DNA from: Epithemia pelagica
Lineage: Eukaryota > Protista > Bacillariophyta
NCBI GenBank assembly: GCA_946965045.2
Contig: OX337231.1
Location: forward strand, 3,596,001-3,660,000
Reading direction: 5' to 3'
Length of the DNA: 64,000 bases
Part shown: positions 10,210 to 60,377 of the stretch, in pieces
Numbering within the stretch: position 1 is the stretch's first letter
Layout: each line of letters begins with the position of its first letter
Made by a program: the position numbers and the translations under genes
The notes under the pieces: model-generated
What the model was told of the DNA's origin: nothing
Seen by the model: the letters and a program-made list of their open reading frames with translations, nothing else
The model's database searches: none

Positions 10210-10601
10210 AAATGCCCAATAACAAGAAGAAGAAGAAACACTCTATTTTTATCTCGCGAGTATAGTTGGATATCCTTTGCAGCGCACGGCAGTGCTGAAA
10301 ACTAGACAATGGTTGTACTACAATGGACTTTGTGTTTGCTGAAGAGACACAAGACGAACGGCTCCGTGTACGACGGTCTACATAGGTCCTGGTTCGCGCA
10401 ACCAGACTCAAATGCATGGCGAGCGATTGTGTCTATAGTAGGATCGTTACATCAATGTCAGACGAGTCTTTTCTGGAGTGTCCGTTCTCTCTGTTTTGAA
10501 AGGAGGTCGTACACATGGTTGCTCATGGTTCGACAAACAAGAGCAGCAAGTGAAAATTCCTAGTAGTAGTAGTCCTACCGTATTACGGATGGTAAGGTCT
10601 T

Positions 10602-11774
10602 TTAATTTCGATTCTTTCCTTTCTTTTTCTTTTTCTTCTTTTTGCCAAGGCCACGTGCCGCTTTTCGTTCTTCTTGGATGGCAAGTTTTTCGGCTTCAAT
10701 ATCTTGAACGACCGTTTCCAACAAACCCAATTGACGTTCAATCGATCCATTGCGAATCAATTCCATCATGACACGGAATTCGTCGGCCGAAAAGGTCAGA
10801 CCTCGTTTCGTCTCGACCGTACGACCCAGAGTTTCGTCGTAATTCATCTGAAAGGAACAACAAAAAAGAACAAAAACAACAAGAAAAGGGTGAGAAAAAA
10901 GACTGGAACGAACAACAGTAACAAAAGGAGCACATCCAATAGACAAGCGACGGACTCGAGTGCTGTTCCAATAATACGTTTGTGGTAGAACATGTCGTCC
11001 TTGAAGCACTATTCTTCAGACACACACATTGTTACAGCACTCGACTCCTCGCTCCATCGACGGTTTCACGATACCATTGTGATATTTGGTGTGACTCCAT
11101 ACTCGGTGGTTTGCTCAGCGTGTTCGTACCTGTCGGAGATCGACAAAGACACCAGTTCCTTTGGTTTGTACCGTCAATCGTCGTTTCTTGACCAAATCAT
11201 AATACAATTCTCCTGCCGCATTGCGTGTGACACCCTCTTTTTCATTTTCTTCTTGTCGCCAGGCACGAACGGCTTGTTTTTCCAATTGTCGACGTTCTCG
11301 ATGCGTCAGGGTGACTGATTCGTCGTCCTCGTCGTCCTCCTCCTCCGCATCGGAGGCAGACTCTTCGTCTTCTTCTTGGTCTGCAGTCTCGTCTCCGTCT
11401 TTGTCGTCTTGTGGGGTGGGTGGTGCTGGATCCCATGGTTTTCGTTTGGTAGGGGTAGCAGGTGCATCCCATGCACGTCGTTTGCTGGTGGTGGTCGATG
11501 CGGCTGTGGGAGTATCCCATGGTCGTTTGGCAGCACTGTGCCATCGAATCTGAGTCGTGGTGGTGGTGGTTGTTGTTGCAGTGGATGGACCGGATTGCAG
11601 TCGTTGTGGTGATGATGGTTGGGATACTACGGGGGACAACGGAGTCGTCATGGCAACCGGGGTGGTAGCAGCTGTGGATGCCACGCACGAAGAAACCAAA
11701 GATCGAGTGGTATTCGACGGTTGTGCAAGCAATTTGGAACCGATGGCTTTTTGATACAACAACCGGACCCACAT
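10602..11774 (-). CDS. PC4/Sub1-fold ssDNA-binding protein with mitochondrial-type presequence (PC4-A), two exons
   Basis: Exon 1 11774-11130, phase-0 intron 11129-10848, exon 2 10847-10602. Spliced domain YYDLVKKRRLTVQTKGTGVFVDLRQ|MNYDETLGRTVETKRGLTFSADEFRVMMELI matches the PC4 pattern (F.L...R.V.V..F....VDIR.......KGI.L...QF..L). Confidence 0.75.
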
Positions 11775-12411
11775 GGTGGAGTTTGTGGCAATGTTTGTTG
11801 TTCTTTAGCAGCCGCCAAGTGTTGTTGCCGTGTGATCGTTGTTTTGTTGTGCAAAGGGACCCTCTCGCCGGCCTTGTCGTCAAGCTCTCCGTCGTTCTGC
11901 AAAGAATCGAGTTCTTTGACTCGATCTCAAACTATCTTGGTTTCAGTATTGTTGTCGTCTCTAGATCGATGAACGACCCAACGAACACAACCGCAACAAC
12001 AACAACATCGCCATCTGAAGAAGGCAAAAGATACCGTTCTGTTGATTGGACGGTCCTTGGCCAGTCGCTCAAAATCAGACGCATCTGCGTCGCGTATTTC
12101 GTGGTCATTGCTACCAATGCTATCCTCTCCAGGACAATGGTGCCCAAGTATCTTTGCTATAGGCGGCAAAGATCATCCAACGAATACGCTTTTCCATCGG
12201 TTCGTGCAGTTTTCTTCTACATTTGACACACAGAGAGACTATAAACTGAAAGACTTTGGAGGTAGAATCTCCTATCCACTATACAGTTCTTTAGACTTGC
12301 CACCGCCGGGTGTGCTTCGGTGGACGGCCATGGTTTTGTTCTTGTGCCGATGGACGGTTTGCCTTCTACTTCCTAGGAAGAAGAGCCGCACTAGACCTAG
12401 AATGTATCGTT

Positions 12412-13846
12412 TTACCCTTCATTGGCGAGCGCTTCCGCTGCTGCTTGTTCCTTGGCTTCTTGTTTCTTTTGTTTCTTCCGGGCCGTTACCAAGGGTTCCA
12501 AAAAGGCCTTGTAGGCTGCCTCTTCTTGAACTCGTTGTTCTTGGAGTTTGACCTTTTGTCGTTTGTGTTTGGGCAAATGGGCCGTCTCTTGCCATTTGGC
12601 ATCGAGACGGGTCATTTCCTGTTCCAAGGTGGAGGCATGTTCTTGAATCAATTCGGCCAAGAACCGAAATTGTCGAATGTTAAAGGTAATGCCTTGCACG
12701 GTAGGGACCCACGTATTGTTGAGTTCCCAATACTACCGGAATCATCATAATAGCACAATCCAAGACAAAGAGAGAGAGAGAAATAATGGTAGAATGAGCC
12801 AAAAATCAACAAAATCCAATCGATTCATCATCATCATCCAAGAGAAACAACAAGACAAACACACACAGGCGACACCGATTGAGAGATTTCAAACCAAACA
12901 AAAACAGAAACATGTGGTGATACACACGAATCCTTCCACGCCACACACATACCTGTCGAAAATCCACGTAGACGGTATTGTTGTAGACTTCCATGGTCAT
13001 TCGTCGTCGGGGGGACAATTCAAAGTAGACAAAGCCATCGGGATTGTGTTTGACAGCAGTATCATCCAAATTGTGACCCCGATCCTGCAAGACTTGACGA
13101 AAAAAGTGTCCGGCCAAGGTGCGATCCCACGTGGGTCGGGCTTGTCCCTTTTTCTTGCGTTTCAACAAGACCTTGTCCAAGGCCAACAATTCCATACTTC
13201 TATTACTAGTATCGTCGTCGTTGTCGTCGTCGTCATCATCTGGGGAACCTCGATACGCATCAAAGGCGGACAAGGGAGACAAGCTTGTTGTTGGTGGTGG
13301 TGCCGTGGTATTGGCGGCATGGGCCAATAATTCTTCATTGTGTTCGTCCTCCAAATCGTCGTCGTCGTCGTCGTCATCATCATCGTCGTCATTATCCTCC
13401 ACTAGATCGTCCTCCTCTTTCAAAAATTCGTCCTCGTCTTCCTCCTCGTCGTCATCTTCATCATCCTTGTGGTCCTTGGCGCTCCTGTCGTCTTTTTGTT
13501 CTTTTTCTTCTTGTTCTACTGAATCGCTCGGTTTGGCGTCTGGATCCGTGCCACTTGTTGTGCTGTTGCTATTCCACCGACTGCTTTGGGATGGGACATG
13601 CCGGACCAATGGTGGTTGGTGCGGAGCATGAGGAAGCATTTTCCAGTGTTGCAGCGTGGTTGGCACGGGGCAGGTCGTTGATACCAAGGTTCGTTGTCCT
13701 CCCATCTCCTGGTGCGGCTGCTCCAAGGATCCTCCTTGTTGTTGTGGTCCGAACACGGAGGCCCGGGAACGACGCCAGGCCACCACGAACCGTTGGGAGG
13801 CCAATGGGTGTCGTCGTTGTTGTCGCAGAGCCCACAACAACGACAT
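12412..13846 (-). CDS. PC4/Sub1-fold protein with mitochondrial-type presequence (PC4-B), two exons
   Basis: Exon 1 13846-12953, phase-0 intron 12952-12733, exon 2 12732-12412. Spliced domain YFELSPRRRMTMEVYNNTVYVDFRQ|YWELNNTWVPTVQGITFNIRQFRFLAELI, followed by a coiled-coil/basic tail. Confidence 0.8.
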
Positions 13847-14922
13847 GATGATGATAATGGTTGTGTGGATGGAGCGGTTGTGGAACAGTGGCTACAGAGC
13901 GCTCGTGTAGTGTCGGTTGTTTTTTTTGTTTGCTGTTGTGTTGCTCTTTTCAAATCTGTGCCAGTACTCCACGAACCAAGAGAGCAACCCCCGAATGGAT
14001 TCGACGATCGAGCAATAACAATAACAACAACAACCACCACAAGATGTGCGGTTGTGATGGTGTGCCGCGAAGCCGAAAAGGGTGGGTATCTTCTTTGGTT
14101 TGGATTCGAACGATTGGGTCGCGTTCCGATCGCTTCAGAGTCGCGTGTTAGGATGCCAGTCATTTAAAGCCTCGGGGCGCGATGCGGTGGGTTTGATCGG
14201 ATCATCCCCCAGCGGGGGAGTTAGTGAGCTTGTGGTTAGCCTCTTATCATCTCCCGCTGGGGAATGCTCTTGCATTTGGATTTGTGACCCTTTTTGGTAA
14301 CAAACACGAGAGAACGGGGCACGACAAAGAGAGCCATTGGCATCATACAACTACTACTACAACGGTTGGAAGAAACATAGTCCTTGATCAAACGCCTCCT
14401 GTGTGTCGTGAAACAATCCACACGCTCCTCCTTATTTCTTTCGGGTGATCCAACCAACAACAATCGCTTTTTGATATACAATGACGGTACGTGAACAAAC
14501 GGATTCATGTGAATGAAAGCGGTTCGAGTACCACACACCACTGTGGTTGTGGTTGTGGTTGTTCTTGTTAGAACCAACATCCAAAAGAACGGCAATGCGT
14601 GGATCCATCGTTCCGAATGCTGCGGCATCGTTGGACCAGCTGCTTCCGGTGCACCTCCACTCACCACCACCGTGTCTATTATTTGCCTTTGTTTAATGGA
14701 TGGATTCCCTTGGATTCTGCTGGATGGTTTGCTTGTTTCTCCATGGCGCAATCCTGTTCAACATGTACATGGCATTTACCATGTCCCAAACCCAAACAAT
14801 CCTTTTTCATTACTATTTTACCAACCACAATCTACAACAATGCATGTTGCGATGTACCCATTGTTTTGTGGCATTCTCTCTCTCTCTGTTGTATATAGCC
14901 TCTTCCTCCTCTTCTTCCCAAA

Positions 14923-15588
14923 GTGGATGCGATTTTGGTTTTGGACGGCGACGGCAATCGTTTGGCGGGCAAATATTATGGTGATTTTTTGAAACAGGCC
15001 GTGGGGGACCAGTCGGCCGAAGACTTGCGGGCCGTGTTTGAAAAACAATTGCATCAAAAAATGGGTGGAACGGTCGCTCGTCCCGATGCCGCCGAAGTGG
15101 TCACCTGTCAAGGCCGAACGGCCGTCTATTGCAGCAGTGGCAACAGTGGTCCCAGTCACAATCCGCACGAAGTCCGCGTCGTGCACGTCGGACCGTCGAA
15201 TGAATCGGAATTGGTCTTGGCCTATTTGTGCGAAGGCATGTACGATGCCCTGTCCCAATTAATGGGTGGTGCCACGGATCGCGGCATGATTTTGGACAAT
15301 TTGGAACTGGTCTTTTTACTCATTGACGAACATTGCGATGGTGGTATTATACTCGAAGTGGATGGGACCAAATTGGCCAGTGCTGTCTTGTTGCGCGATG
15401 AAGAAGCCATGAATGGTGGTGGCATGGAAGACGCGGGTGGCATGCCCAAGTCGGCCGGTGGTATGCCCGCAGGTGGCGGTGGCGGCATGCCGGGCAGTGT
15501 CGCCACGAGTGATTTGACCATTGGACAAGCCTTTGAAGTGGCACGTCGACAATTCATGGCCAACATGACCTCACGGGATGGAATGTAA
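14923..15588 (+). CDS. COPZ1: Coatomer subunit zeta; 5' exon not resolved
   Basis: DAILVLDGDGNRLAGKYY...NESELVLAYL...ILDNLELVFLLIDEHCDGGIILEVD...TIGQAFEVARRQF. The ORF starts at a GTG next to an AG acceptor (14922-14923), so the true ATG is probably in a short upstream exon. Confidence 0.92.
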   Translation: MDAILVLDGDGNRLAGKYYGDFLKQAVGDQSAEDLRAVFEKQLHQKMGGTVARPDAAEVVTCQGRTAVYCSSGNSGPSHNPHEVRVVHVGPSNESELVLAYLCEGMYDALSQLMGGATDRGMILDNLELVFLLIDEHCDGGIILEVDGTKLASAVLLRDEEAMNGGGMEDAGGMPKSAGGMPAGGGGGMPGSVATSDLTIGQAFEVARRQFMANMTSRDGM

Positions 15589-36664: not shown

Positions 36665-39600
36665 TTATGCCTTGTCCTTGGACCGTTGAGGGTTTTGATC
36701 CTTCCACAATTGAATGTTGCGTTTCACCATGTTCATCCATTGGGTCTTCATTTCCCGGTTGGCGTCCTGATTCGGACGAACCCAGCTGGGAAAGACTTGC
36801 TTGTACAGGAACTTACGATCGACACGAGCCCAGTGTTGCCGTAGGGCTGCCGCACTGTCCACTCCGGCGTGGGCCAATGCTGCCACCAATAAGGTAGCCT
36901 TGGGAGAGGGAGTTTTGCGTGTCACTATTGAGGGTGGGTCATTCCAAACGTCGTTCCAATCCTGAAATTCCACCAAGACCTTGCCTTCCAAGAGATATCG
37001 GGCAAACCACCGAAAGGAATCGTCCGACACAAAGTGTTGCGACGTTGCCTTGGGTGTTGCTGTGGTAGAGCTTTGCAACAAGGGATACATTTCGACTTGA
37101 ATGGGGGATATTTCCCAATTGTGATTGCCAAATTTGGTTTGTACACTACAGACCATCTTGTCTTGGTCCTCGTCGTACTTGGGGACGGGTGTTGGCAGCG
37201 GATCTCCCAACTTTAACAACCGACTTCCCTTGGCCAACAAACCCAACCAGGACGGTTCCAGGGGTGTGATTGTTTTGACAGTGGCAATGGGCGTCCCATC
37301 CTTGGCCTTTTTTCGTACCACACTATCAAAGCAAATCCATTTGGGCAGTTGTCGTGGATCTCTCGAATAGACCACGCTGTTCCGGTCCATCCACAGGGGC
37401 TCGGTGAGTTTGGAAGAGCAACTCAAGTAGGCCGATCGGAGACTGGAGGTATACGGACCCGGAGGAATGGATCCCAGTGGAGCCAGCATGGCGACATTGT
37501 CCAACAAACCGGATGCAATGGCTTGACACAACAATTGCTCCTGTACCTTGTTGGGTGGTTTCATGGAACTCAAAAAGCCACCCGTCTTGGCCGCAATGCT
37601 ATTCTCGGCTGCGGTGAGACGTTTCTTGGCCAGACGGGCCAAATGTGTGCGCATCTTTTGAATTCGTGCCATGACAACCGGGTGCAAGCCATGTTCCTCA
37701 CAAAACTTGCGACAGGCCACCTTTTCCGCCATGCCTCCAGCTCCTCGTCCAGCATACGTGTAGGCACCAACGGCCAGGACTCCCGCCAACACATCACCGC
37801 CACGATGCGACCAACCATGACCCTGCTTCTTTTTCTTTGTCGTTTCGTGATTGTCATCAATCTCATCCCCTGGATCGTCCTGGTCCTCGGACGGGCTGGT
37901 TTCTGACTCTCCCTCAGTGCCTTGTTGACCTGAAAGGACAAACGGATTAGACTCGGAAAGGAGGGCCACCATGACAATGGCATAATCCAGAACACCTGCT
38001 TCCGCCGCTACGAGGAGCATTTTCCCATATCGAACACCTAGTGGAAGCTTGGCAACCGCAGCACCAAGCGGGGTGATTTCGCCATCGCCCGTCAAGTGTG
38101 AGGCGGCGGTTGTATTAGCATTGGTATCGACACACCCCAAATTGGCCAATAGCTGAATGGCAGATTCCAACTGATCCTTCCCTGGTGGTGTGGGAAAGGG
38201 AAACTCGGCCACATTGGAAATCCGCATAGCCTTCATGGCCAAGACGACATCTTCCAAGGGACGCGTCAATACCTCGGGCAAGGCAAAGTCATCCATGTGT
38301 CGCCCATACATGGAACTGGAATAGAGACGATAACAATGACCGGGACCTGTCCGACCCGCCCGTCCGGCCCGTTGGTCTGCCGCCGCTTTGGAAATCCACA
38401 TGATATCGTAGGAGGCAATACCAGTGCCTGTGTTGTAATTGCGGCATTTTTGACGCCCCGTGTCAACCACATAGGAAATGCCCGGAATCGTAATACTCTA
38501 AACATGAAACACGCAACAACGACGAGCAGTTTAAATGAAAAAGGAATCGAACAAAGAAGAATACAGTCAGTCAGTGCGTTTTGCAATACCTACCCACGGT
38601 TGCATCAAACAGAGCCACATCAGGAATGAACATACCGTTTCGGCAATGTTGGTCGCCACGACAATGAGTCGATGTCCGTCTGGAACGGGTTCAAAGACTT
38701 TGGCTTGTTCCTCTGTAGACAACATGGAATACAAGGGAAGTATAATGGGTTTCAAGGGAATCGTGCCGTCGTCGTCGCCCTGTGGTTTGGACACTGACAA
38801 CGGGTTGTCTGTTTGGTCAAATGCTTCTTCTTTTTCTTGGTCCGCTGCTGCCGCAAACAGTTCTCCATCGACTTCCTCATCGTCCATATCCCGAAGAAAT
38901 TGGTCGTCCCCGTCTGTCGCTTGTTGTTTCATGATGGAATCCACTTGGGGACGGGTTCGATTGGTTGCACGCCTGCTACTACTAGTACCAAGGAGGGCGG
39001 TTTCCAGCCGTTGTACCATGCGAACAATTTCTTGTTGACCCGTCAAAAAGACGAGAATGCCACCCGGTGGTAATTTGGCATGAATTTTACAAACCTTGGA
39101 AAAGGCCGCATCTTCATACTCGTCCAATACCGTCACCTTGTTGTGATGAACCGTTACGGGAAAAGTTCGTCCGGGAATCTTGAGCACGACGGGTGGTTGA
39201 GGCAATCGGGCGAACAATTTGGGATTGTCGGTAAAATCGGAAACCCGCAAGGTGGCACTCATAATCACCACCTTGAGGGGTGGCAACCAGGACGAGGACT
39301 TGTCACCACTATTCTGTTGTTGGGCCTGTTGTCGACGGAGGGGTATGGTCAGACTGAGCAATCCAATGAGGGCATCGGTATTCAAATTCCGTTCATGGGC
39401 TTCATCAATGCAAATGACGGAATACTGACGCAACAACAAGTCGGACTGAATTTCTTGCAACAAGATTCCATCCGTCATGAATTTGATCCGTGTCGACGGA
39501 CCTAATCCAGCCGTTTCGTATCGGGTTTGGTAGGCGACCAAATTGCCACCAGCCTTCCTGTTGTTGTTAGTACTACTTGTATTGGAAGGAATGGAGTGTC

Positions 39601-41473
39601 CAGTGCCGTGTCCCATTTCATGACAGACGCGTTTGGCCGTGGACACGGCTGCCACACGACGAGGTTGGGTAATCCCAATCATGAATTGTTGTGGTGAGGG
39701 TGTTGTTGTTGTTGCCTCCTCCTCTTTCTCGAAGGAAGTATTGTGGTTGCGGGGGCCGTTGCTGGGTGCTGGTCGCTGTTGCAGGGTAAATCCCGCTTCG
39801 TAGAGAAATTGAGGAACTTGGGTACTCTTTCCGGATCCCGTTTCACCGCAGACAATGGTCACGTCGTGATTCCGAATGGCATCGACGAGTTCAAATTCCA
39901 TGGCGGCCACGGGCAATTCGTACCGTGCCACTTGAAGTGCGGGGGATCGATTCAGTGGCGGAGGAAGGGGCCATGCCGAAGACGAGGAGGTTTTCTGTTG
40001 GTGATTGACCTTGGCAGAATGTGTCCCTGTGGTTGTTGTTGTGGTTGTGGTCGAGAGTGGAATGGGCGTTCCGGGTTGATACGAGGGATGATGGGCAAAG
40101 GCGGCAGCAATGTCTTGTTCCTCGTCGCTGGGTGAATCCTCCTTGTCCTTTTCTTCCGTGGTATCCATTTTGTCTTCATCATGGTCCTTCTTTTCGGTTG
40201 GAGTGGTGATGAGTTTGGGAAGTGATGATTGCTGCAGTGATTGTTGTTTGTGTTGGAGTGCAGAAAAGGAGGCCATCATTTGGGCCGCCACTGACAGTGA
40301 CGACGAGGTTGTGGAATTGTTCTTGTTCTTGTTGGTATCTCGTGATGGTGGCACGGGGTCGGAAGGATTGTCTGTTTTGGATTCCATATCCTCATCATCA
40401 TCGTCGTTGTCCTTGTCGTCCTTGTCGTCGTCCCTTGGATGGGTCCTGTGGGTTTCGGCATTGCGTTGCGAATCCACATGATTTGTTTGGTCCCTAGTGT
40501 CCGTATTGTCCAGTATACGCAAATCCTTGGACTTGGTCGTTGTACCAGGGCCCTGGTCGGTGTGGTTGTGGTTGTGGCTGGATGGTGCGGGGTGCAACTT
40601 TGATGGTTGGTAATCGTCGTCGTCATTGTCTTGTTGTTGTTGTGGACGTGAAGAAGAACAGACGGGGCGTTTGCGTTTGCGACTTGGTTTGTTGTGGTGG
40701 TGGGAGGGCAACGTGTCGGTCGTCGTGCGAGGTGAGGATGGTGGTACGGGTTGCTCGTTCGATTGAGAGTGCGGCTCCATTGTAGTTTTGTCCTCCTTCT
40801 TCTTGTCGTCGTCGTTGTTGTTGTTTTTGTCTGGGAGTGATTTCAGCCCCCGACTCGTTGGATCGTTTTCTACTGTTGTGGTGGTATACAACAAGTCGCG
40901 TTCCTGTGATGTCAAGGCCAGCAATTGTTGCTCCTTGCGGAGCGCCTGTTGGACTTGTTGTTTGACCGTGGGAACTTGTCCCAAGGTGGCCGAGGATTGC
41001 AACAAGTGTCGTTGACTGTTGGTCAAGGTTGCGTGTTGCTGCAATTTCGTATACAAGGCTTGACGTCGTTGCTTTTGCTGTCGTCGATCTTGCAATTGTT
41101 GCAATTTGCGACGCTGTTGTTTTTGCAAGTGACACGCCGCTTGAACTTCGTCGGCCGTCAATTCGATCTCCTTCTTTTTCTGGTGCTTCTTCTTGTCGGG
41201 CAAGACAATCAAGGCATTAGGATCTTGATCGTAGACAGCATTGGACTCTGGATTGTGCGTGTCGTGGTTGGAGTTTGTGGCGTCCTTGTCCTTGTCGTTG
41301 TCGTCGTAGGGTTGTTTCGACGACGACGACGCCACGAGTTGGCGCAATCGCTCGAGTTCTTGTTCTTCCTTCGTGTCGTCGTCATCGTCATTGTCATGGT
41401 TCGTCATGCGACGTTGCGAGACCGACCGGTAGTTGCGAACCGTTTTCGAGGGCAAGGCCTTGGAACGACGCAT
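36665..41473 (-). CDS. DHX37: DEAH-box RNA helicase DHX37/Dhr1, two exons
   Basis: Motifs GETGSGKSTQVPQFLYEAG, TQPRRVAA, MTDGILL, DEAHER, MSATL, LVFLTGQQEI, ATNIAET|SITIPG (intron 38635-38498), QRAGRAGRTGPGHCYRLYSS, plus HA2/OB C-terminal region. Confidence 0.93.
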
Positions 41474-56792: not shown

Positions 56793-58310
56793 GGTAAGTT
56801 AAGGTTATTTTGCTTGGTACAGGACGACGACGGCAGAAAGGATAGAGAGGACGAGGACGAGGAGTCGAGGAGAGATGTGCTTCTTGTGTGCTTGTTGTGG
56901 TCCAACTTCACGTTCCAGTATCCACAGAGAGAGAGAGAGGAACCAATGAGAAATGAGTATGAGTAGGCTGTCTCCTTGCATGGCGAGAGACAAAAGATAC
57001 GGCGAGAGGCCATTTTTGGTTCTTCTTCGGCTCTTTTTGGTTTGTGGCTCAGAGAGAGACAAGACAGAAGTGTGAGAAATAAAGGGCTTTTTCTCAATGT
57101 GGTACGAAAAAGTGTTCGCATTGTTGGCTCGCTCGGCGGACTCTTTGGGGAGCTTCGAAGGAGAGGGGCGGAATGTAGCGAGATCTATTGAAACGACCCG
57201 GAATTACCCCACCATCTCCCCAAAGCGTGTGGCGAGCGATCCAACGCCTCTCTCGACGCTCGAGCATCAGACGATCTGGTCGAAGCTGTCCACAGCAGTA
57301 ATCAGGTAGAGTATAGGAGTACCTCTTTCGAGTTCTCTCTCTCTCTCGAGCAATGGAGTCCATGGTTCCCGTTCGTAGTAGTACTCGCCTCTGTCAAGGT
57401 ATCGCTATATGAAACTTTGCTAGTATTGGACGTGTGAGAAGAAGAATAGGGTAAGGTACACCCAAAAGGCCTTGATTATTAGGAGTATTGTACACCCACT
57501 CGTTTCGGCAAACGGGTGGGTCTTTCGCGAACAACAATAACAGTAGTAATAGGATGATCCTTTTGCAACAATGAGCAAGTCGAACGGCGACGGCGGACAT
57601 CCAAAGTCTACTTCCATTGGGCTTTTTAGCATTTGACTACTTTATTCTGCGAAATGGACAACGCCAACTTCCACAGTTCCCATGCATGTTCCATCAGCTG
57701 TGTTTGCGGTCCTCCTCCAGGCCAAAGCAACACCATGAGCTCGTTCCGAACAAGGTTGGTCCTTTTCGACCTGCAAATTCTGGTATTATGTACTTCTAGT
57801 AGAGACTAGACACACATGTGGAATGTGGGACCATATGAAAGACAACATATTCTAGAGTAGGTAGCTCTAGGGAGACATGCTAGATACAACATGTTACGAA
57901 GATGTATGTGTATGTCGGCCGAATCGTGCACTGGCTCGTTGGAACACGCAAGACACAGACACGAATGTTTAACCCCGCTGTTTTGGTACGACTGCCCAGT
58001 CTGTAAGCAATTCAAAACTGTTCCGACTCAACGGATATGGTTGGTCTTGGTCACGTACGTCGACCGATTCAAAGGACCCAAAGTCGGCCCACAAAGTCCA
58101 AAACCCAAACGGCAACGGACGCATCCGCTAGATTCCCATTACATGCATTCATCTGGGGCATTGGATTGGAATACAGAGCAGGACGATTCTACTTTTCTGG
58201 TTCATTCTCTTGATTTTCGTTTCCTTTCACCAACACAATTCAATCGGCTCTTCCTCTTCTATTGCACAACGAAGATTGAGAGAGTGTTTGGTTCCGACAC
58301 CACACACAAC

Positions 58311-60377
58311 ATGATTACGATCCACAGTGTTGGTTCGGCTCGAACCGTCGGGTTCCCACTCCTCCTGTTGCTGCTGCTTGCTCTAGTAGTGAAAGAGACC
58401 AATGCCAGGCTGTCGCAAGAGGAATTGCTGCAACGGGTCGCTTCCATCGTACCCAACATGGAGGCAAGTGATTGTGTCCATGTGGATGCCTACAAAACGG
58501 AGGACGACGAATCGGATGCAGATTGGTTCGATGTCATGAAGGACTTGGAGGCCACGGAAATTGTCCCCTGGCAACACTTGTGTTCGGCCTGCATCCCAAA
58601 ACAAAACCTCCAACGTCTCGCCCAACACGAAACGATCCAAGGATTCATTGTGGCACCACCACCCATGGAAGCATCGTCATTGTCCTACCATCCCTATCCA
58701 GCCCAATCGGGCTCGGTAGGCAAGGAGGCTGCTCAAGCCACCATGGCCGATATTGCTCGCAAACGATTCAACGTGGATGGTTCCGATGTCAAGGTGTGTA
58801 TTTTTTCCAATTCCTTTGATTGTCGGGAGGGGGACGACAGTTACGAGGCGGACATTGCTTCGGGAGACCTTCCACCGGGTATTGAAATCTTTTTTGAAGG
58901 CAATTGTACCGTCTTGGAAGCCGGAAATAGCGAAACGGTCGATGAAGGACGGGCCATGGCCCAAATCATTCACGATGTCGCACCGGGTGCGCAATTGGCA
59001 TTTTTTGCCACGGGCTCAACCCTTGTCTCGTATACCAATCGGGCCGCGCTCGTTCCAGAAAAGGGCTGTGACGTTGTCGTGGACGATGTGGTCGCTTTCA
59101 CCGAACTCTATTTCCAACGCGATGTACTGAGTCAAGAAATTCGTCGTGTCGTGACACACGAGGAAATTCCTTGGATTTCAGCCGCCGGTAATTTGCATGG
59201 ACAATGGTACGAAACCAAGTTTCATCCCATTCGTACCGATGAGGGACAAATTTGTCACAATTTTGCGGTCGACCCGGACAAGGACATGCCGCAATTGACG
59301 CAAAATTTTACCATCTTTCTCCGAAGGTGGCAAATCTTTTTACAATGGGACCAGCCCTCCATTTATGCTTCGGCACACGTTCCTCCCCCCTTGGACATTG
59401 TCGCCAGTGTCGCGTTTGAGGGAAGTACCCGGCGTGGTCGACCCTTGCGATTATCCACGGCAAATTTCACATCCTTGGGCGATGACATGGCTGGATTTCC
59501 GGGACTTGTCCTAACGTATCCTGCGACCTCCCTTTTTCTTTTTTCTCGTCCCTTTGAAATCCAGATGCAACTCAAAGTGTGTGTGAATAGTGGCAAGTGG
59601 CCCAAGAATTTCAAGTGGTTCTTCCAGGCGTTGTTCAATGACACTACTACATCGAACATTCCCTTTGCCAGTGCCGTGCCGAATGCCACCTCGGGAGAAA
59701 CCTTTGGTCATGTCAACCTGGATGAATCGGTCATTGTTGGGGCCGTCAACGTGGAGGAGACTCCCGTCTTTAGTGGCGAGTTGCCTCAAATACGAAACTT
59801 TTCCTCGTCGGGTGGATCGCAACGGACCTTGGCCGACAATGGACGGCGGCTCAAGGAACCCGAAATTCCCCTCAATCCCAACGTGTGTGGACCCGACAAT
59901 ATCCCCACCACCTTTTTTGGAAGGGTCGATAATCGATTTACGGGAACCTCGGCGGCGGCACCGGTACTGGCGGGAATTGCTGCCCTCATGCTACAAGCCA
60001 ATCCCTCGTTGAAACCGGATCAACTTCTGGAGATACTGCAAGACACGGCCATTGATATGGACGATCCCACCACCACCATCACCACATCCTACCAAGACTA
60101 CCACAAACGAAGGACCAGCATTGCTCCATATCATTCGTTTGAGGAGGATTGGGTAGATCCCAGTTTTGATGTAGGATTTGACTTTAAAACGGGATTTGGC
60201 TTTGTCGACGCCAACAAGGCGGTCGAAGCCGCAGTCACGGGCAAAAAGGGGGGCAAAGGGGGCAAGAAAAGCCCACGGAGTGATGGTGGTGGAAGAGGCA
60301 AAAAGAAGAAGAGAAGAAAACGACGAGGACCCATGCACTACAGACCACGACGACAAATGAAATCGAAATGGAGCTAA
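58311..60377 (+). CDS. Secreted subtilase, bacterial S8/S53-like subgroup (DEGRAM type)
   Basis: Signal peptide LLLLLLLALVV; VDGSDVKVCIFSNSF, DEGRAMAQIIHDVAPGA, VVVDDV, SAAGN, GTSAAAP, GFGFVDANKAV; polybasic tail. ATG 58311. Intronless. Confidence 0.88.
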   Translation: MITIHSVGSARTVGFPLLLLLLLALVVKETNARLSQEELLQRVASIVPNMEASDCVHVDAYKTEDDESDADWFDVMKDLEATEIVPWQHLCSACIPKQNLQRLAQHETIQGFIVAPPPMEASSLSYHPYPAQSGSVGKEAAQATMADIARKRFNVDGSDVKVCIFSNSFDCREGDDSYEADIASGDLPPGIEIFFEGNCTVLEAGNSETVDEGRAMAQIIHDVAPGAQLAFFATGSTLVSYTNRAALVPEKGCDVVVDDVVAFTELYFQRDVLSQEIRRVVTHEEIPWISAAGNLHGQWYETKFHPIRTDEGQICHNFAVDPDKDMPQLTQNFTIFLRRWQIFLQWDQPSIYASAHVPPPLDIVASVAFEGSTRRGRPLRLSTANFTSLGDDMAGFPGLVLTYPATSLFLFSRPFEIQMQLKVCVNSGKWPKNFKWFFQALFNDTTTSNIPFASAVPNATSGETFGHVNLDESVIVGAVNVEETPVFSGELPQIRNFSSSGGSQRTLADNGRRLKEPEIPLNPNVCGPDNIPTTFFGRVDNRFTGTSAAAPVLAGIAALMLQANPSLKPDQLLEILQDTAIDMDDPTTTITTSYQDYHKRRTSIAPYHSFEEDWVDPSFDVGFDFKTGFGFVDANKAVEAAVTGKKGGKGGKKSPRSDGGGRGKKKKRRKRRGPMHYRPRRQMKSKWS

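Follow-up and report, generated by a model that had tools for sequence, protein, structure and literature searches.

Two tandem, spliced genes with predicted PC4-like domains in the diatom Epithemia pelagica

Gene structure, transcription and variation

The 64,000-nucleotide stretch of DNA analysed here (hereafter the window) comes from the diatom Epithemia pelagica (contig OX337231.1, positions 3,596,001 to 3,660,000 of the forward strand). From sequence and translation, the locus at positions 10602-13846 of the window consists of two tandem minus-strand genes with two exons each, which are called gene A and gene B here. Both are predicted to encode a domain of the PC4/Sub1 type; PC4/Sub1 is among the best-studied small single-stranded DNA (ssDNA)-binding cofactors. 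The genes are made up as follows (aa, amino acids; nt, nucleotides).

11774..10602, minus strand: gene A, 296 aa when spliced
11130..11774, minus strand: gene A exon 1, 215 aa, last residues VDLRQ; leader, basic-Trp repeats, acidic tract and predicted N-terminal half (N-half) of the PC4 domain
10848..11129, minus strand: gene A intron, 282 nt, GTACGA...TTTCAG, GT-AG, phase 0
10602..10847, minus strand: gene A exon 2, 81 aa plus stop; predicted C-terminal half (C-half) of the PC4 domain, long helix and a tail of eight Lys (K8)
13846..12412, minus strand: gene B, 404 aa when spliced
12953..13846, minus strand: gene B exon 1, 298 aa, last residues VDFRQ; Arg-rich leader, long acidic tract, KRKKKG and predicted PC4 N-half
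12733..12952, minus strand: gene B intron, 220 nt, GTATGT...CCGGTAG, GT-AG, phase 0
12412..12732, minus strand: gene B exon 2, 106 aa plus stop; predicted PC4 C-half and long helical tail

All four exon lengths are divisible by 3, so both introns are in phase 0. Four public runs from a single study, kept as contigs, contain the locus (X1 to X4). Runs X1-X3 are DNA-like, with unbroken contigs through both introns and the intergenic DNA. The depth of X4 is about nil in both introns and in the intergenic bins (the gene A intron bins stand at 0 and 0.66), and its contigs skip the introns exactly. The joint 10847->11130 leaves out the 282 bases of the gene A intron, and the joint 12732->12953 leaves out the 220 bases of the gene B intron, with 201 letters on its shorter side. 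Both have CT..AC ends on the plus strand, which is GT..AG on the strand of the genes. Because of these near-empty introns and intergenic bins and these exact joints, X4 is taken as RNA. Its contigs span 11130-11430 of gene A exon 1, joined to exon 2, and on the side of gene B exon 1 they span 12953-13346, 13546-13739 and 13822-14026. Both genes are transcribed and spliced.

Some properties of X4 tell against leaning on it too heavily. The library type is not on record, and its RNA nature is read from the behaviour of the run. Contigs of this kind cannot reveal transcript ends. Codons 4-45 of gene A are without X4 cover, a gap which proves nothing at an X4 depth of 2-6. Two other joints, 11345->13434 and 13231->14023, are rejected as splicing; they lie in GAC/GAT-type repeats, have short sides and are present in the DNA-like runs too, and are therefore considered low-complexity artefacts.

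The original prediction, which was made from the letters and their open reading frames (ORFs), described two adjacent same-strand genes whose PC4 domain is split by an intron, with the intron in phase 0 directly after D(L/F)RQ in both. The X4 joints and the exon-by-exon tests given below uphold the first part of this description; the sequence, the exon lengths and the exactness of the joints uphold the second. A public gene call on this DNA (ENA ERZ21939226, ctg1324l) reads through the gene A intron and carries no Pfam domain, so the PC4 domain is invisible to ORF-style annotation. The locus is an example of how a domain can stay hidden in this way.

Coding differences between samples fall at 20 positions, 12 of them synonymous and 8 non-synonymous. 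All four differences in the gene B PC4 core are synonymous, as are both variants in gene A exon 2. The sole indel, of 3 nt at 13212 in the Asp tract of gene B, is in frame. The genes are under constraint, and selection on the domain core is purifying.

A second version of gene B (12431-13346), from another haplotype or strain, is present in contigs of X2, X3 and X4; it has ~18 single-base differences and lacks 3 nt, in frame, at 13212. No differences are seen in the contigs listed over the gene B leader (13536-13812). Just 3' of the gene B stop, at 12332-12410, contigs of X1-X3 skip 77 bases; the likely cause is a haplotype-specific deletion, located in the 3' untranslated region (UTR) or in intergenic DNA.

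The PC4-like domain and its DNA-contact residues

The spliced models were tested exon by exon. They were compared with the Pfam profile PF02229, for which the gathering score of the whole domain is 25 bits, and with P0002, a 393-aa protein (from a Logan contig of 1309 nt) with four tandem PF02229 domains (E 6e-82). The repeats of P0002 match solved chains of MoSub1 and human PC4; four tandem PC4 domains in a single chain are an unusual architecture for the family. The predicted half-domains are located as follows.

11130..11222, minus strand: gene A PC4 N-half, residues 185-215; BLASTP to P0002 repeats, best E 3e-5
10716..10847, minus strand: gene A PC4 C-half, exon 2 residues 1-44; BLASTP to P0002, E 8e-5
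12953..13045, minus strand: gene B PC4 N-half, residues 268-298; PF02229 profile 1-24, 16.9 bits, E 0.0044
12637..12732, minus strand: gene B PC4 C-half, exon 2 residues 1-32; PF02229 profile 25-50, 12.3 bits, E 0.12

When whole exons are scanned against Pfam, a weak PC4 match in gene B exon 1 is all that is found. With 40-residue pieces flanking the gene B junction, PF02229 is the sole family matched, and the two matches complement each other exactly at the splice site: profile positions 1-24 are covered by the 24 residues that end exon 1, and positions 25-50 by the 26 residues that open exon 2. The halves were scored separately, and their rough sum is ~29 bits against the gathering score of 25 bits for this domain of roughly 52 positions. 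An exhaustive phmmer search of 1.84 billion representatives with the last 84 residues of gene B exon 1 gives P0002 as its sole true match (E 4.4e-10). The other match of that search, P0003 (a bacterial SpaA-repeat protein), is spurious.

In BLASTP, all four exon pieces of genes A and B align in register with the P0002 repeats, and the P0002 domains are 30-44% identical to the two N-halves. Alignments of the exon 1 pieces end at the D-x-R-(E/Q) of the repeat, and the gene A N-half matches all four repeats. The alignments of gene B exon 2 start at P0002 residues 62 and 147, immediately beyond the stretch to which the end of exon 1 aligns; gene A exon 2 has two extra loop residues relative to the repeats. 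A local hidden Markov model (HMM) was built from the four P0002 repeats, and each exon piece was compared with 500 shuffles.

Gene A exon 1 piece: profile 1-40, 21.3 bits, score reached by 0/500 shuffles
Gene A exon 2 piece: profile 43-82, 18.3 bits, score reached by 0/500 shuffles
Gene B exon 1 piece: profile 6-40, 25.4 bits, score reached by 0/500 shuffles
Gene B exon 2 piece: profile 41-72, 9.6 bits, score reached by 0/500 shuffles

The presence of a PC4-like domain in both genes, as had been proposed, is supported by the PF02229 halves of gene B, the register with P0002 and the behaviour of the local HMM against shuffles; the similarity to PC4 far exceeds chance. The HMMER search with PF02229 that was suggested at that time, run exon by exon, matches the gene B halves directly; gene A is matched through the profile of P0002 repeats and not through Pfam. 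Judged by their sequences, genes A and B are new, highly diverged members of the known PC4/Sub1 family (PF02229).

The two N-halves are 37% identical to each other over 35 residues (E 5e-7) and the two C-halves 28% identical over 67 residues (E 4e-6); outside the PC4 domain, A and B have nothing recognisable in common. The domain is cut by the intron at an identical position in both genes, between D-x-R-Q and the next aromatic residue, and this common position suggests an old tandem duplication. The locus is very likely a tandem pair of old, strongly diverged PC4/Sub1 paralogues which are transcribed and spliced and have kept one ancestral phase-0 intron.

The residues that contact DNA were mapped to the human PC4 chain through P0002; in human PC4 numbering they are taken to be R70, F77, R86 and W89. 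The W89Y entry 4usg and reference 66 of PMC7549692 agree with this numbering. Gene B keeps R281 (the Arg of K-M-R), Y288 at the F77 position, R297 (the Arg of D-I-R) and a Trp at the W89 position, which is residue 2 of exon 2; its turn reads Q-G-I-T-F at the position of the K/R-G-I-S-L turn. Gene A keeps R198, R214 and the turn R-G-L-T-F. The conserved DNA-contact set is present in gene B and, in part, in gene A.

For gene A in particular, several results go against its assignment to the family. K205 takes the F77 position, and nothing aromatic is in register with W89. Neither of its exons has a Pfam PC4 match when scanned alone, so P0002 and the paralogy with gene B are the grounds for its membership. 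A Foldseek search of the PDB with the half-domain model of gene A exon 2 gives no match, as is expected for half a domain. With the stacking aromatics lost, the gene A product may bind DNA poorly or differently; speculatively, it might act as a partner of the gene B product.

Searches for relatives returned little else. Comparison of the exon pieces with PDB sequences by phmmer gives rows at chance level only. Word-index protein searches (gene A exon 1; gene B residues 200-298, with E limits of 0.01 and 10) return only the read-through ORF of the window itself, P0001. No close relatives of A or B are found in metagenome scans, and there is no usable match among ESM Atlas look-alikes for the two first exons. 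Orthologues, including relatives in other diatoms, are absent from the results of the protein, metagenome and ESM Atlas searches. On PC4 or PF02229 in diatoms or mitochondria, a review of the superfamily (PMC7549692) is the only relevant result of the literature searches.

Type II PC4 domains are units of four strands plus a helix that pair into homodimers by helix swapping. Aromatic stacking and basic contacts let such a dimer bind ssDNA or melted duplex as two antiparallel stretches, and multimerisation can drive ATP-independent unwinding (PMC7549692). By analogy with the family, each of the A and B proteins would provide one such unit, and two units would pair by helix swapping; the two beta-sheet channels of the dimer would then hold single-stranded or melted DNA without sequence preference. 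For the gene B product, dimerisation and ssDNA binding would be expected as in the family. A damping or regulatory effect on binding is probable for the acidic tract upstream of the domain, comparable to that of the Ser/acid-rich region in human PC4. Oligomerisation and further, unspecific contacts with nucleic acid would probably come from the long extra helices and the basic tails.

Leaders, upstream regions and subcellular location

Outside the domain, both proteins have long N-terminal extensions of unusual composition, preceded by DNA that is free of ATG. The relevant features are listed below.

11775..12005, minus strand: ATG-free stretch 5' of the gene A start, 231 nt with no ATG in any frame; probable 5' UTR
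13847..14160, minus strand: ATG-free stretch 5' of the gene B start, 314 nt with no ATG in any frame; probable 5' UTR and promoter
11517..11774, minus strand: gene A acid-free leader, residues 1-86, starting MWVRLLYQKAIGSKLL, Ser/Thr-rich; first Asp or Glu (D/E) at 87
13724..13846, minus strand: gene B acid-free leader, residues 1-41, starting MSLLWALRQQRRHPLASQRFVVAWRRSRAS; first D/E at 42
11430..11549, minus strand: gene A basic-Trp repeats, residues 76-115; IRWHS, KRPWDTP, KRRAWDAP and KRKPWDPAP
11277..11432, minus strand: gene A acidic tract, residues ~115-166
13172..13549, minus strand: gene B acidic tract, residues ~100-225

An in-frame stop lies upstream of the first ATG in each gene, 11 codons away in gene A and 19 in gene B, with no ATG between. 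At least 180 nt of ATG-free upstream sequence is found at only 4.3% of minus-strand positions in the window. The X4 contig 11801-11964 falls upstream of the gene A ATG; the contigs 13546-13739 and 13822-14026 take in the gene B leader, the ATG and 180 nt upstream of it, with the latter contig crossing the ATG. As the ATG-free stretches resemble 5' UTRs kept clear of upstream AUGs, the leaders of both genes are very probably translated, with the first AUG opening each leader. The gene 5' of gene B is divergent: an ORF at 14923-15588 on the plus strand has a clathrin-adaptor small-chain domain (PF01217, E 1.5e-6), and the intergenic distance is ~1 kb. An Rfam search of 10300-14300 finds no RNA family.

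In gene A, the parts follow each other as acid-free stretch, four basic-Trp units, acidic tract, domain, long helix and K8 tail. In gene B the order is leader, Pro/His/Gln-rich stretch, acidic tract, KRKKKG, RPTWD, domain and two further helices to the C-terminus. The motif QIRWHS stands at residues 75-80 of gene A, and SRWNS, at residues 89-93 of gene B, ends the Pro/His/Gln-rich stretch. The basic-Trp region of gene A includes KRR-x10-KRK, which resembles a bipartite nuclear localisation signal (NLS); Pfam scans of exons and pieces give no family or motif match for the basic-Trp units. Gene B has the related SRWNS (89-93) and RPTWD (237-241). An AF2 model of gene A exon 2 alone has strands at 2-4 and 9-11 and helices at 21-32 and 35-66 (mean pLDDT 75.5); that of gene B exon 2 alone has a hairpin and helices at 19-31, 33-51 and 55-105 (mean pLDDT 88, and >90 in the tail). 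Translations, composition and these exon 2 models agree with the order of leader, acidic tract, PC4 domain and basic helical tail that had been proposed earlier, QIRWHS and SRWNS included.

The gene A leader has a net charge of +4 in its first 30 residues and a WVRLL/VRLLY hydrophobic pattern at residues 2-7. The gene B leader has 7 Arg and no D/E in its first 30 residues, and a hydrophobic moment of 0.58 for ASQRFVVAWRR. Both N-termini contain a TOM20-like hydrophobic-x-x-hydrophobic-hydrophobic pattern within residues 1-7. The highest 8-residue Kyte-Doolittle means are just 1.76 (A) and 1.11 (B), so neither leader has a signal-peptide core. Targeting to plastid or endoplasmic reticulum is rejected for want of a hydrophobic h-region at either N-terminus; import into diatom plastids needs a signal peptide, and the hydrophobic core of one is missing from both leaders. 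A crude leader test (no D/E in the first 30 residues and a net charge of +3 or more) is also passed by 3/20 other long ORFs of the window (~15%).

It is somewhat favoured here, with limited confidence, that both proteins are ordinary nuclear chromatin and transcription cofactors of the Sub1/PC4 type, with N-termini that are disordered and presequence-like by composition only. A nuclear location is the default in the family; human PC4, MoSub1 and relatives in plants are nuclear proteins according to PMC7549692 and PMC9039731, and the characterised PF02229 proteins described in the literature found are all nuclear, phage or bacterial. Both A and B have NLS-like motifs (KRR-x10-KRK and the K8 tail in A, KRKKKG in B). 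Upstream of the domain, A and B have an acidic tract beside a basic cluster, which is also the arrangement in human PC4. However, the extreme N-termini are hydrophobic and basic, not simply polar or disordered, and are unlike the acidic N-terminus of P0002; the leaders also remain presequence-like in character after losing all sequence similarity to each other. It is possible, if tentatively so, that these leaders are presequences and that both proteins are mitochondrial, either exclusively or with dual location in the nucleus; the case is stronger for B than for A. They would then be ssDNA-binding, nucleoid, recombination or repair factors, as Whirly is in plant organelles. The composition of the N-termini points this way: 7 Arg, no acid and a high hydrophobic moment in B, no acidic residue until position 87 in A, and in both the TOM20-like pattern without a signal-peptide core. 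So do the probable translation of the leaders and the contrast with the nuclear-type relative P0002, which starts acidic and NLS-bearing and lacks a leader of this sort. Within the PC4-like superfamily, the Whirly and MRP1/2 branches do work in organelles (PMC7549692). Set against mitochondrial import are the 15% background of the crude leader test (which counts in favour of a nuclear location), the NLS-like clusters, acidic tracts resembling that of nuclear PC4, and a gene A acid-free region (86 aa) that far exceeds a usual presequence. The literature searches found no organellar PF02229 protein, and no orthologues were found in which conservation of the leaders could be judged. The mitochondrial targeting of the original prediction survives in part, as a plausible reading: the acid-free, basic, TOM20-like N-termini, the missing signal-peptide core and the very probable translation of the leaders agree with it, and the 3/20 background and the NLS-like motifs speak against it.

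An elaboration of the mitochondrial location, which must be considered rather unlikely, is an asymmetric heterodimer, mitochondrial or dual-targeted, in which B would provide a complete ssDNA-binding channel and A an altered one, with both stacking aromatics lost. If true, it would be without precedent in two respects, as a PF02229 protein that acts in an organelle and as a type II PC4 domain that is heteromeric. A compartment other than nucleus or mitochondrion is improbable. Least credible of all is that the genes are decaying duplicates or mis-modelled ORFs without function. No relatives are found outside the domain core, the low-complexity tracts are long, and both DNA-stacking aromatics have gone from gene A, all of which would fit decay; against it stand transcription and precise splicing of both genes, intact reading frames, the excess of synonymous changes with an indel that is in frame, and 5' leaders free of ATG.

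Should the leaders drive import, diatom mitochondria would use a different PC4-like branch from that of plants (Whirly) and kinetoplastids (MRP1/2). This would be a third independent recruitment of the PC4-like fold to organelle genomes, and the poorly known nucleoid of diatom mitochondria would gain a candidate factor. Should they not, the locus would be a tandem pair of nuclear Sub1-like genes that is lineage-specific and evolves fast, and it would recall how common acid-free basic N-termini are in the E. pelagica genome.

Elsewhere in the window, large ORFs at 36665-41473 on the minus strand have DEAD/DEAH, HA2 ratchet and OB_NTP_bind matches, and probably represent a single DEAH-box helicase gene that an intron or frame change interrupts. 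An 828-aa ORF at 57891-60377 on the plus strand has a subtilase (Peptidase_S8) match near its C-terminus (E 8.8e-9).

Comparison with known PC4-like proteins

Whirly (plant organelles) and MRP1/MRP2 (kinetoplastid mitochondria) are type I PC4-like folds of the same superfamily which bind ssDNA or RNA in organelles (PMC7549692). They have two repeats per chain and form tetramers, whereas A and B have one repeat per chain and belong to another sequence family. No Whirly (PF08536) profile, nor any Pfam family other than PC4, is matched by the A and B exon pieces at E up to 10. With a single repeat per chain and no Whirly profile match, membership of A and B in the Whirly family is ruled out.

The PC4-like protein of phage T5 (PMC7549692) and bacterial YdbC/DUF2128 (PMC3575825) are type II dimeric ssDNA binders, a class to which A and B would also belong. 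A and B differ in being spliced eukaryotic genes whose best matches are eukaryotic domains of the Sub1/PC4 type; none of the searches returned a phage or bacterial relative. P0002 differs from A and B in having four domains per chain instead of one, and in its acidic, NLS-bearing and leaderless N-terminus.

Compared with type II PC4/Sub1 proteins (human PC4/SUB1, yeast Sub1 and Magnaporthe MoSub1), A and B have an acid-free, presequence-like N-terminal extension of 41-86 aa, very long acidic tracts, and an extra helical basic tail of 30-70 aa after the domain helix. Gene A is without the stacking aromatics and has two extra loop residues. Beyond the ~70-aa core, neither protein has detectable similarity to anything. 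Within the core, however, the domain appears to be the same: A and B have the conserved Arg, D-x-R-(E/Q) and K/R-G-I/L-S/T-F/L, the domain is preceded by an acidic tract and a basic cluster, and gene B keeps both stacking aromatic positions (Y288 for F77 and Trp for W89).

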